In this document: positions 37,868 through 48,143 of the stretch, piece by piece | Layout of the letters: the number at the start of each line of letters is the position of its first letter | Numbering within the stretch: the stretch's first letter is position 1 | DNA from: Eukaryota sp. TZLM1-RC | Taxonomy: Eukaryota > Protista > Metamonada: BaSk clade | Direction: 5' to 3' | Assembly (NCBI GenBank): GCA_040285825.1 | Contig: JAUPSS010000013.1 | Span: 1 to 64,000 of the forward strand | Length of the DNA stretch: 64,000 nt | The notes under the pieces: generated by a model | Database searches by the model: none | Told to the model about the DNA's origin: nothing | What the model saw: the letters and a program-made list of their open reading frames with translations, nothing else | Position numbers and translations under genes: made by a program

Positions 37868-40665
37868 GAACTTCATATGAGCCTCAGTAAATCGTATCAA
37901 AAACGATACTCTTACACTTACAGCAATTGTTTTATTAGTTTACAACATTCAATTGTATACTTTTTGATTTTTTACTTTTTTTACAATTTAATGTTTAAAA
38001 ATTAATACACTCAATTAATTCAAATATATACAAAATCATTTGAAAATGTAATCATGAGTTTGTACTGATCAAGTAACACATAGCCAACATTACTAACACA
38101 CAATTTCACACAAAGTTTGATCACAAGTTGATCACATCTAGTACATAAAGACTACATGCAACTCATCTAATCATACCAATGACCATTCAACCAATCATAC
38201 CAATGACTAATCAAATGACCATAGCACGGACTTTAACACCACAATTTTTATATTAATTGTCCCAAAATGGACTTTAAAGATTTGACCAATGATTGTAATA
38301 AACAACCATTGGTCAATATACGAAACTAGGAACTTCATATGAGCCTCAGTAAATCGTATCAAAAACGATACTCTTACACTTACAGCAATTGTTTTATTAG
38401 TTTACAACATTCAATTGTATACTTTTTGATTTTTTACTTTTTTACAATTTAATGTTTAAAAATTAATACACTCAATTAATTCAAATATATACAAAATCAT
38501 TTGAAAATGTAATCATGAGTTTGTACTGATCAAGTAACACATAGCCAACATTACTAACACACAATTTCACACAAAGTTTGATCACAAGTTGATCACATCT
38601 AGTACATAAGGACTACATGCAACTCATCTAATCATACCAATGACCATTCAACCAATCAAACCAATGACTACTCAAATGACCATAGCACGGACTTTAACAC
38701 CACAATTGTTATATTAATTGTCCCAAAATGGACTTTAAAGATTTGACCAATGATTGTAATAAACAACCATTGGTCAATATACGAAACTAGGAACTTCATA
38801 TGAGCCTCAGTAAATCGTATCAAAAACGATACTCTTACACTTACAGCAATTGTTTTATTAGTTTACAACATTCAATTGTATACTTTTTGATTTTTTACTT
38901 TTTTTACAATTTAATGTTTAAAAATTAATACACTCAATTAATTCAAATATATACAAAATCATTTGAAAATGTAATCATGAGTTTGTACTGATCAAGTAAC
39001 ACATAGCCAACATTACTCACACACAATTTCACACAAAGTTTGATCACAAGTTGATCACATCTAGTACATAAGGACTACATGCAACTCACCAAATCACACC
39101 AATGACCATTCAACCAATCAAACCAATGACTACTCAAATGACCATAGCACGGACTTTAACACCACAATTGTTATATTAATTGTCCCAAAATGGACTTTAA
39201 AGATTTGACCAATGATTGTAATAAACAACCATTGGTCAATATACGAAACTAGGAACTTCATATGAGCCTCAGTAAATCGTATCAAAAACGATACTCTTAC
39301 ACTTACAGCAATTGTTTTATTAGTTTACAACATTCAATTGTATACTTTTTGATTTTTTACTTTTTTACAATTTAATGTTTAAAAATTAATACACTCAATT
39401 AATTCAAATATATACAAAATCATTTGAAAATGTAATCATGAGTTTGTACTGATCAAGTAACACATAGCCAACATTACTAACACACAATTTCACACAAAGT
39501 TTGATCACAAGTTGATCACATCTAGTACATAAAGACTACATGCAACTCATCTAATCATACCAATGACCATTCAACCAATCAAACCAATGACTACTCAAAT
39601 GACCATAGCACGGACTTTAACACCACAATTGTTATATTAATTGTCCCAAAATGGACTTTAAAGATTTGACCAATGATTGTAATAAACAACCATTGGTCAA
39701 TATACGAAACTAGGAACTTCATATGAGCCTCAGTAAATCGTATCAAAAACGATACTCTTACACTTACAGCAATTGTTTTATTAGTTTACAACATTCAATT
39801 GTATACTTTTTGATTTTTTACTTTTTTACAATTTAATGTTTAAAAATTAATACACTCAATTAATTCAAATATATACAAAATCATTTGAAAATGTAATCAT
39901 GAGTTTGTACTGATCAAGTAACACATAGCCAACATTACTCACACACAATTTCACACAAAGTTTGATCACAAGTTGATCACATCTAGTACATAAGGACTAC
40001 ATGCAACTCATCTAATCATACCAATGACCATTCAACCAATCAAACCAATGACTACTCAAATGACCATAGCACGGACTTTAACACCACAATTGTTATATTA
40101 ATTGTCCCAAAATGGACTTTAAAGATTTGACCAATGATTGTAATAAACAACCATTGGTCAATATACGAAACTAGGAACTTCATATGAGCCTCAGTAAATC
40201 GTATCAAAAACGATACTCTTACACTTACAGCAATTGTTTTATTAGTTTACAACATTCAATTGTATACTTTTTGATTTTTTACTTTTTTACAATTTAATGT
40301 TTAAAAATTAATACACTCAATTAATTCAAATATATACAAAATCATTTGAAAATGTAATCATGAGTTTGTACTGATCAAGTAACACATAGCCAACATTACT
40401 CACACACAATTTCACACAAAGTTTGATCACAAGTTGATCACATCTAGTACATAAGGACTACATGCAACTCACCAAATCACCAATGACCATTCAACCAATC
40501 ACACCAATGACTACTCAAATGACCATAGCACGGACTTTAACACCACAATTGTTATATTAATTGTCCCAAAATGGACTTTAAAGATTTGACCAATGATTGT
40601 AATAAACAACCATTGGTCAATATACGAAACTAGGAACTTCATATGAGCCTCAGTAAATCGTATCA
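37868..40665 (-). repeat. 28S-3'-end spacer repeat, ~6 uninterrupted units
   Basis: Same ~460 bp unit; begins abruptly at GAACTTCATATGAG. Confidence 0.95.
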
Positions 40666-42077
40666 GGTGTCGAAGTTAATAGTTATTTAGATGATACTTA
40701 TATTCTTTGTCAAAAAGAAGTTAATATTGAGTTGTTATTAAATGAATTAGAATTAATTTTCAAGCAAATTGGTTTGAAAATTGAATTTGACAAAAACCGA
40801 AGTGTTTTCAGTTGAAGATGATTTCATGTGTTTGGGATCTCCAATAGGTTCTACTGAGTTTGAATCCTCTTTTATAATTCAAAAAGTTCAAAATGAATTG
40901 ATTCCCAGTTTATTTTTATTAAAATCATTACCACTACAAAATCAATTTTTAATATTTAGACATTGTATTAATTCAATTTTGATGTACTGGGCCCGAACAG
41001 TTCCCTATGAATCCACCAAAATGGGTTTTCATCTTTGGGTTTCAGAATTTGTTGCTTATTTCAACTTAATAGGATTGGAAGAATCAAATAATTTAGATTC
41101 AATTTATTTGCCTCATTCTTTGGGTGGATTAGGGTTTCTCCATCTGGGCCAAGTTGCACATATTTGCTATTCAGTTTCTGTATACTTGGCTGTACGTGAT
41201 CTTGATTTAACAAATTTAATTCCAAGTGATCAGTATAGGGTTTTACTATCAGCTTTATCACCTTCTTTTGCTGGTTTTGACTCAATCTGGGACAAACGAA
41301 TTAAAATTTGCCAACGTCAAATCACTTATTTATTTTATAAGGAAAAATTGAGTCTTTTGAAGGAAAAACTATCAGAATGTGAACGACTACAATTTATTTC
41401 AAATTGTGACAGTCAATCTTCTTGTTTTTTGAAAGTCTTGCCTATTTCTCAAAATTTCACGTTCTCAGATGATTGCTTTAAATACCTAATAAATCTGAGA
41501 TTGCTTCAAGGAGAACAATTTGTGATATGTCCTTTGTGTGGTTATGGAGACCTAGGCTTAGATCACTCTTTTCAATGTAGAAAAGTATCGAGAATGGTTA
41601 CACAAAGACATGACGAAGTAAATAATTTTATTAACGAATTAAATAATTTTGAATCTGAAAAAGAATTTAAATTTGGTTTAAATAAGCAGTAACGTGTTGA
41701 TGTATTTCAAACGTCAACCAAAATTGCTTTTGATGTTACCATAGTTGGAGGTTATGGTAATAATTGGAGTGATGCTTTTTCGAAAGCTTATTCTGATAAA
41801 ATTGCAAAGTATTCAATTTTAAAAGAATTAAATTTAATTAACCAAATTGTTCCTCTCGTTTTTAGTGTTCATGGGGGTTTTTACACTAAAACAAAAACAC
41901 TGTTTGACCAATTTGGATGGAATGAGGTAGCAGATGAAATTAGTTGTATCATTTTGAAGAGTAGCTTTAAATGCCACATTGCTTTTAATTATATACTTCA
42001 AAAGAAAAGAGAAGATCGTCAATGTTGGTAGGTAGTTTTTTTAGTATTCAAGTAGTTTCTTCTTAATTTTCAATAAA
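40666..42077 (+). mobile_element. CRE-like non-LTR retrotransposon family A, copy 1 (5'-truncated)
   Basis: TSD AGTAAATCGTATCA (40652-40665 and 42078-42091); begins just before RT motif SYLDD; LPHSLGGLG, CPLC..HSFQC..RHD knuckle, RLE motifs FDVTIV..KIAKY..PLVFS; premature TAA at 41690; ends CAATAAA. Confidence 0.92.
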
Positions 42078-47310: not shown

Positions 47311-48143
47311 AGTAAATCGTATCAAAAACGATACTCTAACACTTACAGCAATGGTTTTATTAGTTTGCAACATTCAATTGTATACTTTGACAATTTAATG
47401 TTTAAAAATTAATAAACTCAATTAATTCAAATATATACAAAATCAATTGAAAATGTAATCATGAGTTTGTACTGATCAAGTAACACATAGACAACATTAC
47501 TCACACACAATTTCGCACAAAGTTTGATCACAAGTTGATCACATCCAGTACATAAGGACTACATGCAACTCACCTAATCACACCAATGACCATACAACCA
47601 ATCATACCAATGACTACTCAAATGACCATAGCACGGACTTTAACACCACAATTGTTATATTAATTGTCCCAAAATGGACTTTAAAGATTTGACCAATGAT
47701 TGTAATAAACAACCATTGGTCAATATACGAAACTAGGAACTTCATATGAGCCTCAGTAAATCGTATCAAAAACGATACTCTTACACTTACAGCAATGGTT
47801 TTATTAGTTTGCAACATTCAATTGTATACTTTTTGATTTTTTACTATTTTTACAATTTAATGTTTAAAAATTAATAAACTCAATTAATTCAAATATATAC
47901 AAAATCAATTGAAAATGTAATCATGAGTTTGTACTGATCAAGTAACACATAGCCAACATTACTCACACACAATTTCGCACAAAGTTTGATCACAAGTTGA
48001 TCACATCCAGTACATAAGGACTACATGCAACTCACCTAATCACACCAATGACCATACAACCAATCATACCAATGACTACTCAAATGACCATAGCACGGAC
48101 TTTAACATCACAATTGTTATATTAATTGTCCCAAAATGGACTT
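47311..48143 (-). repeat. Last ~1.8 spacer repeat units, ending at a deletion junction
   Basis: The unit breaks at AAAATGGACTT and joins family B sequence GGCATTGTGAAGG. Confidence 0.9.

Follow-up and report, generated by a model that had tools for sequence, protein, structure and literature searches.

A restriction-like-endonuclease retrotransposon at the amplified 28S rRNA gene end of Skoliomonas litria

Introduction

Site-specific retrotransposons that lack long terminal repeats (LTRs) and carry a restriction-like endonuclease (RLE), such as R2, serve as the model of target-primed reverse transcription, and they are in development as safe-harbour gene-insertion tools. R2 has one open reading frame (ORF) with N-terminal fingers, a reverse transcriptase (RT), a CCHC motif and an RLE; it enters a multicopy ribosomal DNA (rDNA) target with a precise 3' junction and variable 5' junctions, and it lies in sense with the rRNA and is co-transcribed with it. 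Here we describe family A, an element of this kind, found in a stretch of 64,000 nucleotides (hereafter the window) at positions 1 to 64,000 of contig JAUPSS010000013.1, assembly GCA_040285825.1. The isolate, which protein matches name as Eukaryota sp. TZLM1-RC (taxid 3038954), is Skoliomonas litria, a haloalkaliphilic free-living metamonad (PMC11603281), and our literature search found no mention of Skoliomonas retrotransposons.

Family A resembles R2 in this layout, its fingers being putative, and in this junction pattern, and R2 proteins are the best solved match for its RT as well as its endonuclease. It differs from R2 in several respects: its target is not the R2 site but a point ~28 nt from the 28S 3' end, it is antisense to the rRNA and so is not co-transcribed, its target duplications measure 9-14 bp, an RNase H domain lies upstream of the putative fingers, and its specificity is leaky and directed mostly to spacer copies of the gene end. 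Neither the canonical site nor the sense orientation of the R2 clade proper was found in family A.

An RNase H upstream of the RT was described for oomycete Utopia elements, whose authors called the position unique, and certain Utopia families, of weak specificity, occupy short sequences that are U2-like, with variable 5' and precise 3' junctions (PMC4640811). We liken family A to Utopia by layout only, and its insertion at unit-like cores recalls the weakly specific Utopia at U2-like sequences. Utopia targets U2 small nuclear RNA genes, however, whereas A targets the 28S end; Rfam found no small nuclear RNA gene in the window, and the targets at A junctions are the 28S-end motif and its look-alikes. 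CRE, SLACS and CZAR of trypanosomatids, GilM and GilT of Giardia and, reportedly, Genie of Giardia are also protist RLE elements in tandemly repeated targets, GilM and GilT coming from another metamonad and being placed with CRE by their RT. The targets of these elements, unlike that of A, are spliced-leader genes or telomeric arrays.

R4, R5/LIN (the LIN families being those of planarians), R8 and R9 are independent gains of new rDNA sites in RLE lineages, and family A and its sister family D represent the same kind of shift within one genome. To our knowledge, all reported sites of R4, R5/LIN, R8 and R9 lie in the rRNA gene body, and none in the terminal helix or a spacer subrepeat, where A is found. 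The literature on rDNA-specific elements that we searched holds gene-body sites and non-specific spacer insertions but none aimed at the terminal 28S helix or a spacer subrepeat, in agreement with a preliminary description of this DNA, which knew of no element targeting the 28S end. Elements of this type are familiar; what is new is the target, together with the orientation and the order of the domains.

Results

Four copies of family A share one 3' junction in the spacer unit

Most of the window outside the rRNA genes consists of a ~460-bp spacer unit in tandem arrays. Every unit is made of the last 70 nt of 28S (29928-29997), with homology to the gene reaching CAGCAAT at 29997, and of 3' external spacer. 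One of the arrays holds four copies of family A. The features needed here are as follows (a slash within a sequence marks the junction or nick):

29928-33230, minus strand: intact 28S rRNA gene (Rfam)
29952-29964, plus strand: target site in the intact 28S gene, unoccupied
37868-48143, plus strand: spacer array (28S end and 3' external spacer) with the four A copies
40648-40665, plus strand: target motif CCTC/AGTAAATCGTATCA at the 5' junction of copy 1
40666-42078, plus strand: A copy 1, 1413 bp, duplication AGTAAATCGTAT(CA)
42531-43794, plus strand: A copy 2, 1264 bp, duplication AGTAAATC(G)
44252-45598, plus strand: A copy 3, 1347 bp, 2-nt AA filler on the 5' side, duplication AGTAAATCGTAT
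46051-47311, plus strand: A copy 4, 1261 bp, read as the same insertion event as copy 2

All four copies ended at AATAAAA/GTAAATCG, at 42078/42079, 43794/43795, 45598/45599 and 47311/47312, and the sequence directly 3' of AATAAAA was the same in each (GTAAATCGTATCAAAAACG; GTAAATCGTATC). The 5' junction was CGTATCA/GGTGTCG in copy 1, AAATCG/ATGATTTC in both copies 2 and 4, and CGTAT+AA/TGTTATT in copy 3; for copies 2-4, the target motif lies at 42518, 44234 and 46038. The duplications measured ~12-14, 8-9, 12 and 8-9 bp in copies 1-4, a spread that comes from microhomology with the element, as is visible from longer copies at two other loci (L001 and L003). Reading of the junctions thus confirmed the single shared 3' nucleotide and the three different 5' junctions of the preliminary description, copy 4 being equal to copy 2, and its duplications of 14, 9, 12 and 9 bp were right within the 1-2 nt (up to 6 nt in copy 1) of this ambiguity.

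The motif CCTCAGTAAATCG occurred 60 times in the window, with 0.02 occurrences expected. Four of these sites were occupied by A, one was the empty site in the gene, and the other 55 were empty units, so that the counts given previously, of about 55 empty units besides the intact gene and of roughly 60 spacer sites to one gene site, hold. Between the nick at 29955/29956 and the 28S 3' end that Rfam predicts (29928) lie ~28 nt, and, as had been proposed, the nick falls within the 28S-derived 70 nt of the unit. The A reading frame is on the plus strand, antisense to the rRNA.

Copy 1 is 5'-truncated within the RT just before YLDD, with a +1 frameshift at 40777 and, at 41690-41692, a TAA nonsense codon; copies 2 and 3 carry the same TAA codon, together with one private frameshift in copy 2 and two private 1-nt insertions in copy 3. 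Copy 4 has an open reading frame of 401 aa, with TTA where the others have TAA, and the first Cys of its CCHC is changed to Ser. The possibility that TAA is a sense codon, as in some metamonads, was ruled out, because 12 other copies have TTA at this position and because the 1240-aa ORF of another element in the window is open under standard stops. All A copies found in units are truncated and dead.

Homopolymer lengths also differ between spacer units, for example five or seven A's in TATCAAAAACG (window 1184-10000). This variation looks like long-read assembly noise, and single-base frameshifts in the A copies therefore need caution.

Insertions in units use one nucleotide, and insertions elsewhere lie at look-alike sites

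Nine loci of the assembly, to which all closely related loci of family A belong, were fetched via A-derived proteins, and every copy was mapped. Counted over the window and three of these loci, 15 copies were inserted in units, with seven distinct 5' junctions and one 3' junction:

Window: copy 1, one event; copies 2 and 4, one event; copy 3, one event
L004: one copy, one event
L006: two copies of one kind, one event; six copies of a second kind, one event
L009: two copies, one event

The duplications of these copies end at CG, CGT, CGTAT or CGTATCA. Chance, or the abundance of the unit alone, was ruled out as the origin of this pattern, since seven events fell on one nucleotide of a 460-bp unit. 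Such repeated independent use leaves target-primed reverse transcription at a defined nick as the one sensible reading, which is what the preliminary description had proposed from the window copies. More than 20 copies of A ended in AATAAAA, with at least 10 distinct 5' truncation points, duplications of 8-14 bp and no LTRs. The flank beyond CAGCAAT was of the spacer type in all 15 unit copies, and the 3' flank of the copy in L003 was likewise spacer-type. Three gene-type sites were seen (one in the window and two in L002), all of them empty.

At least five A insertions lay outside the rDNA target, with no unit close by, in surroundings of ordinary genes or of other repeats, and A is thus not strictly rDNA-specific:

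L007: target CACCC/AGTAAACACTCTCC (CACCC/AGTAAAC), duplicated
L008: target TGCTC/AGCAAAGTG, duplicated; a second, partial copy is stacked there
L012: TACTC/AGTAAAGG at the 5' side and AGCAAACG at the 3' side; old copy, ~10% diverged
L001: target TTCC/AGCATCTGAACA (TTCC/AGCATCTG), duplicated
L005: 3' flank begins GTAAATC; no duplication found

When compared in register with the unit site (-5 to +9), the targets in L007, L008 and L012 matched it at 8-9 of 13-14 positions, counts slightly inflated by the first A of the target, which is ambiguous with the element end. Random positions of the same loci reached this level of match at p ~0.002-0.008 each. The L001 target resembles the core weakly, and the two flanks in L012 are similar but not identical, as expected of a duplication in a ~10% diverged copy. 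Insertion at look-alike sites indicates that the specificity of A is for a short core of about CTC/AGTAAA and not for rDNA as such; the units are the most numerous perfect sites that the element recognises. The preliminary description had A target the amplified 28S-end motif, which stands as regards the one nucleotide used in units and falls short as regards the leakiness. It had also held that copies at unrelated sites would speak against such targeting; off-unit copies do exist, but three of their targets resemble the core.

An alternative would place the specificity in the RNA, with read-through transcripts that carry downstream unit sequence annealing to any unit and setting the insertion point, and with an endonuclease of little specificity. 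The element finishes with its AATAAA signal, and its transcripts may therefore reach into the flank; the near-full-length copy in L003 has 112 nt of unit on its 3' side in a non-unit context, and a downstream-unit variant is common to the window copies. We nevertheless regard this alternative as quite unlikely, because in the off-unit copies AATAAAA directly adjoins the duplicated target of the copy itself, without intervening unit sequence, and because the resemblance of the L007, L008 and L012 targets to the core is well above background. Furthermore, ordinary units lie downstream of the copies in L004, L006 and L009, and the sister family D has this geometry at another sequence. Recognition of a short core is the reading that we prefer.

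Off-unit copies are older, with a divergence of 3-10% as against 2-3% or less for unit copies. This age difference fits a fast turnover of the array, and a recent sharpening of A specificity may be an alternative source of it.

In L008 (5032-5750), two tandem A 3' fragments occupy one off-target site with the duplicated target GCAAAGTGTAAT between them, which suggests that a regenerated site was hit repeatedly. The A fragment in L010 has an internal deletion and no ends, and was uninformative.

Public contigs contain further A sequence. A contig of the same species shows an additional copy that runs over the common 3' junction and has TTA where copies 1-3 have TAA, and another extends beyond the truncation point of copy 1 and so represents a longer copy. 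The k-mer depth in public contigs was 2500-14000 for the unit and 6-20 for A, hundreds of times higher for the unit, although this depth is per contig and gives no copy numbers; no contig spans a whole A copy. In a public contig (contigs X1, X2), A sequence from 41344 onward is joined to DNA beginning GGGAAGAAAGAAACAGGC, which was not found in any fetched locus; the join is either a further A fragment outside the unit or a nested insertion.

The window copies are related by duplication and homogenisation

Copies 2 and 4 share a 5' junction with only 1 nt of microhomology and represent a single insertion that was duplicated along with its unit. The units downstream of all four copies carry a deletion of ~20 bp:

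42079-42517, plus strand: downstream unit of copy 1, private deletion variant TATACTTTGACAATTT
43795-44233, 45599-46037 and 47312-47750: downstream units with the same deletion variant

This deletion was present in 4/4 occupied and 0/54 empty units, and it is missing also from A-flanking units at other loci. The TAA nonsense codon was found in copies 1-3 only among the 15 copies scored, copy 4 and 11 copies elsewhere having TTA, and the four window copies form a clade with 99/97 support. Within the element, seven single-nucleotide polymorphisms in a 410-bp block group copies 1 and 2 against 3 and 4, whereas the downstream units group copies 1 and 3 against 2 and 4. The view of the four copies as four independent hits fails on the common event of copies 2 and 4, the shared private deletion, the nonsense codon shared by copies 1-3 and the clade.

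These same facts, namely the private deletion, the confined TAA codon, the clade, the common junction of copies 2 and 4 and the mosaic of polymorphism blocks, would also be expected if a single insertion in the window had given rise to all four copies by tandem duplication of the A copy with its unit, followed by deletions at the 5' junctions. L006 shows that blocks of A fragment and unit amplify as higher-order repeats. A single insertion, however, needs three deletions that each begin in the same 5-nt stretch of the duplication, a stretch that is the junction range of independent insertions elsewhere (CG, CGT, CGTAT), while independent 5' truncations with gene conversion or unequal exchange between neighbours account for both sets of facts. 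We consider the single insertion unlikely, and less likely than two or three independent insertions. Our reading is that two or three independent 5'-truncated insertions fell in neighbouring units and were later homogenised and duplicated, and the homogenisation would have proceeded via unequal exchange and gene conversion between neighbouring 1.3-kb copies.

In L006 (2274-13107), a 1025-bp block of A fragment and unit is repeated six times inside a larger duplication of ~7.7 kb. Dead A copies multiply by array recombination, as seen at this locus.

Domains of family A

The domain order was read from one near-full-length copy:

L003:7898-11865: near-full-length A copy, 3968 bp

The order in this copy is a low-complexity N-terminus, RNase H, two C2H2-like spacings, RT, CCHC and endonuclease. 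The RNase_H domain covers residues 140-280 (8.7e-14), and RVT_1 matched residues 672-876 of the A protein P0074 (1.5e-18); R2 proteins were the best solved matches of the A RT (5.2e-8). The two C2H2-like spacings (L003 translation, residues ~318-340 and ~357-379) were seen by eye only and had no Pfam finger match. Among 11 aligned C-terminal domains, the H and the last C of CCHC, the H of RHD, and E, D, D-x-T, K and KY were invariant, and the first two Cys of CCHC were kept in at least 90%. The profile of these 11 members matched the R2 endonuclease region with the motifs in register (E 2.5e-5), while the endonuclease domain of a single A sequence had no match among solved structures (PDB). 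The RT, together with this CCHC/PD-(D/E)xK profile match to R2, indicates that A is a non-LTR retrotransposon bearing an RLE of the PD-(D/E)xK type. The RT, the CCHC with RLE and the target-primed footprint of the RLE-bearing group (R2/NeSL/CRE/R4/HERO) were all found in it.

The L003 copy has two frameshifts before the CCHC and the endonuclease domain, which may be long-read homopolymer errors. Its piece of unit on the 3' side is the result of either 3' transduction or a rearrangement. On the 5' side the upstream repeat breaks at 7897, and neither its continuation nor any duplication was found within 19 kb. At L003:7898-7925 the putative 5' leader adjoins ATTTACTGAG, the reverse complement of the target core; this is perhaps chance and too short to interpret. 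Since A is antisense to the rRNA, it is not co-transcribed by polymerase I as R2 is and needs a promoter of its own; this putative promoter would lie in the leader of ~100 nt.

A search of 1.84 billion representative proteins returned only 58 relatives of A, 18 of them at E below 1e-10, so that the family is rare. The nearest database relatives come from Logan, JGI and ENA. Cluster look-ups in the TZLM1-RC assembly yielded 29 A-derived ORF fragments and a 1048-aa product, and a word-based homologue search with the 1048-aa protein gave one weak match.

Sister families and a sister isolate

The closest relative of A is family D, which sits in a second 28S copy:

52856-55446: second 28S, truncated (Rfam)
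54871-56650, plus strand: family D (~48-55% amino-acid identity to A), stacked in the second 28S body at GCCGCTTCG

The D copies lie head to tail and antisense, each ending ATAAAA/G, a terminus as in A, with a 9-bp duplication. The minimal A duplication (GTAAATCG) and the D duplication both end in TCG, and it looks as if the cleavage geometry had been conserved while the recognised sequence changed. The location of the A target in the 28S-derived 15% of the unit, together with a sister family that targets 28S, suggests that the specificity of A began on the gene and that the array multiplied the site later.

L002 (6001-9545) carries an 1155-aa element, P0009, with RNase H, RT and RLE, 33% identical to A. 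It is in sense orientation, directly upstream of the sarcin-ricin loop sequence AGTACGAGAGGAAC in a 28S fragment, and the antisense orientation is thus not general among families of this group.

In the isolate TZLM3-RCL, the only A relative that we traced is 35% identical and inserted in the 28S body, where it (L011:8940-8990) uses the same 28S site as family D. The one rDNA locus of this isolate that we examined has a single 28S end copy with no 28S-end amplification, and the homologous site reads CTC/AGCAAATCG. Its spacer contains a 5S gene (L011:1962-2081, downstream of 28S on the same strand) and unrelated repeats; no 5S gene was found in the TZLM1-RC window. The preliminary description had suggested checking whether relatives that lack A also lack the amplification, and TZLM3-RCL lacks both a close A relative and, at the locus examined, the amplification. 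A link between A and the array is compatible with this, but one isolate gives no causal direction.

This isolate bears on the idea that the array serves its host as a decoy, having been amplified or kept large because it absorbs A insertions that would otherwise destroy 28S genes. Were this so, a site-specific retrotransposon would be countered by a genomic decoy array. The window offers ~59 spacer sites per gene site, the flanks were of the spacer type at all unit-type junctions seen, the gene sites were empty in 3/3 cases, and the isolate without the amplification yielded only the 35%-identical relative. On the other hand, the pressure from A looks small, given the low occupancy (4/59 in the window) and an A depth hundreds of times below that of the unit; the isolate comparison is a sample of one without direction of cause, and the pattern seen follows from the numbers alone, with no need of selection. 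Subrepeats of the spacer that take in the gene's end are also common in the absence of any such element. We find a host decoy extremely improbable. A wider version, in which free-living metamonads harbour a lineage of antisense RLE elements with RNase H upstream of the RT, whose target shifted from the 28S body to the terminal helix and for which the array was favoured or maintained as a decoy, is in our judgement very doubtful.

Other features of the window

The remaining features lie around the A copies:

33390-33550, minus strand: 5.8S of the rDNA unit (Rfam)
33650-35432, minus strand: 18S of the rDNA unit (Rfam)
449-19206 and 26638-29997: further spacer arrays
19351-26488, minus strand: Ty3/gypsy-type LTR retrotransposon inside a spacer array, with protease, RT, RNase H and integrase in a 1240-aa ORF
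62617-63978, minus strand: ORF with an H-type lectin domain and a glycosyltransferase family 2 domain

The Ty3/gypsy-type element has gag-like ORFs upstream and a GC content of ~45%, against 30% around it. At the edge of the rDNA region, the lectin/glycosyltransferase ORF is the sole ordinary gene seen. At 449-1184, one interval measures 735 bp instead of the ~460 bp of one unit, and its stretch 533-764 matches units of L002 in inverted orientation. The last spacer unit ends abruptly at 48143 (window 48143-48400); the element fragment past this point ends AAATAAAA and adjoins ACCTGTCTCACGAC, a 28S sequence near the sarcin-ricin loop. Positions 48143-48400 are the beginning of a stack of families B and C that replaces the 3' end of the second 28S.

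Discussion

We conclude that family A is quite probably an RLE element that recognises a short core and hits mostly spacer copies of the amplified 28S end by numbers. The identity of the junctions, the duplications, the domains, the look-alike off-target sites and the local homogenisation are observed, whereas the order of strand cleavage, recognition by protein and neutrality are inferred. The A protein would recognise a core of about CTC/AGTAAA(TCG), and its endonuclease would place a nick in the rRNA-sense strand, at the complements of 29955/29956. With the 3' OH of the nick as primer, reverse transcription would then start at the AAUAAAA end of the element's RNA. Cutting or joining of the other strand may take place 9-14 nt downstream, in the 5' arm of the terminal helix (inverted repeat of GTATC and GATAC), and would make the duplications vary and 5' truncation frequent.

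The core has its best match in the last 28S helix, which has been multiplied with the 3' external spacer in the intergenic spacer. At ~60 spacer sites per gene site in the window, most insertions would fall in spacer units, an insertion at a perfect site having a chance of about 1 in 60 of striking the gene. Such insertions would be dead on arrival and probably harmless; array recombination would afterwards copy, mix and delete the inserted A, and a minority of insertions would end at look-alike sites elsewhere. The preliminary description had left a choice between a host that absorbs insertions and a harmless niche; a niche by numbers fits the data, while the decoy half of that choice comes down to the 60:1 arithmetic.

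Several points weigh against this account. The loci were sampled through annotated protein fragments, so the split of ~7:5 between unit and off-unit events is not a rate, and at ~60 spacer sites per gene site three empty gene sites out of three have no power to show avoidance of the gene. The sole near-full-length copy has two frameshifts and sits outside an intact unit. The nick position is ambiguous by one A, recognition would be by protein rather than by RNA, and A is known here from its DNA sequence alone, a search for RNA runs having returned none.

Family A adds a target not reported before for site-specific RLE elements, the terminal 28S helix, reached mostly as spacer copies, in an orientation that excludes co-transcription with the rRNA and with a domain order that puts RNase H first. 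The A/D pair, two families of one genome that use different 28S sites but share their cleavage geometry, amounts to a natural experiment in target change, and the leaky insertions at look-alike sites allow the recognition core to be estimated for the first time. At this locus, array recombination is seen to set how many copies of such elements there are, and not retrotransposition alone. This account is one of the first of mobile elements from skoliomonads, a metamonad lineage that was itself described recently.

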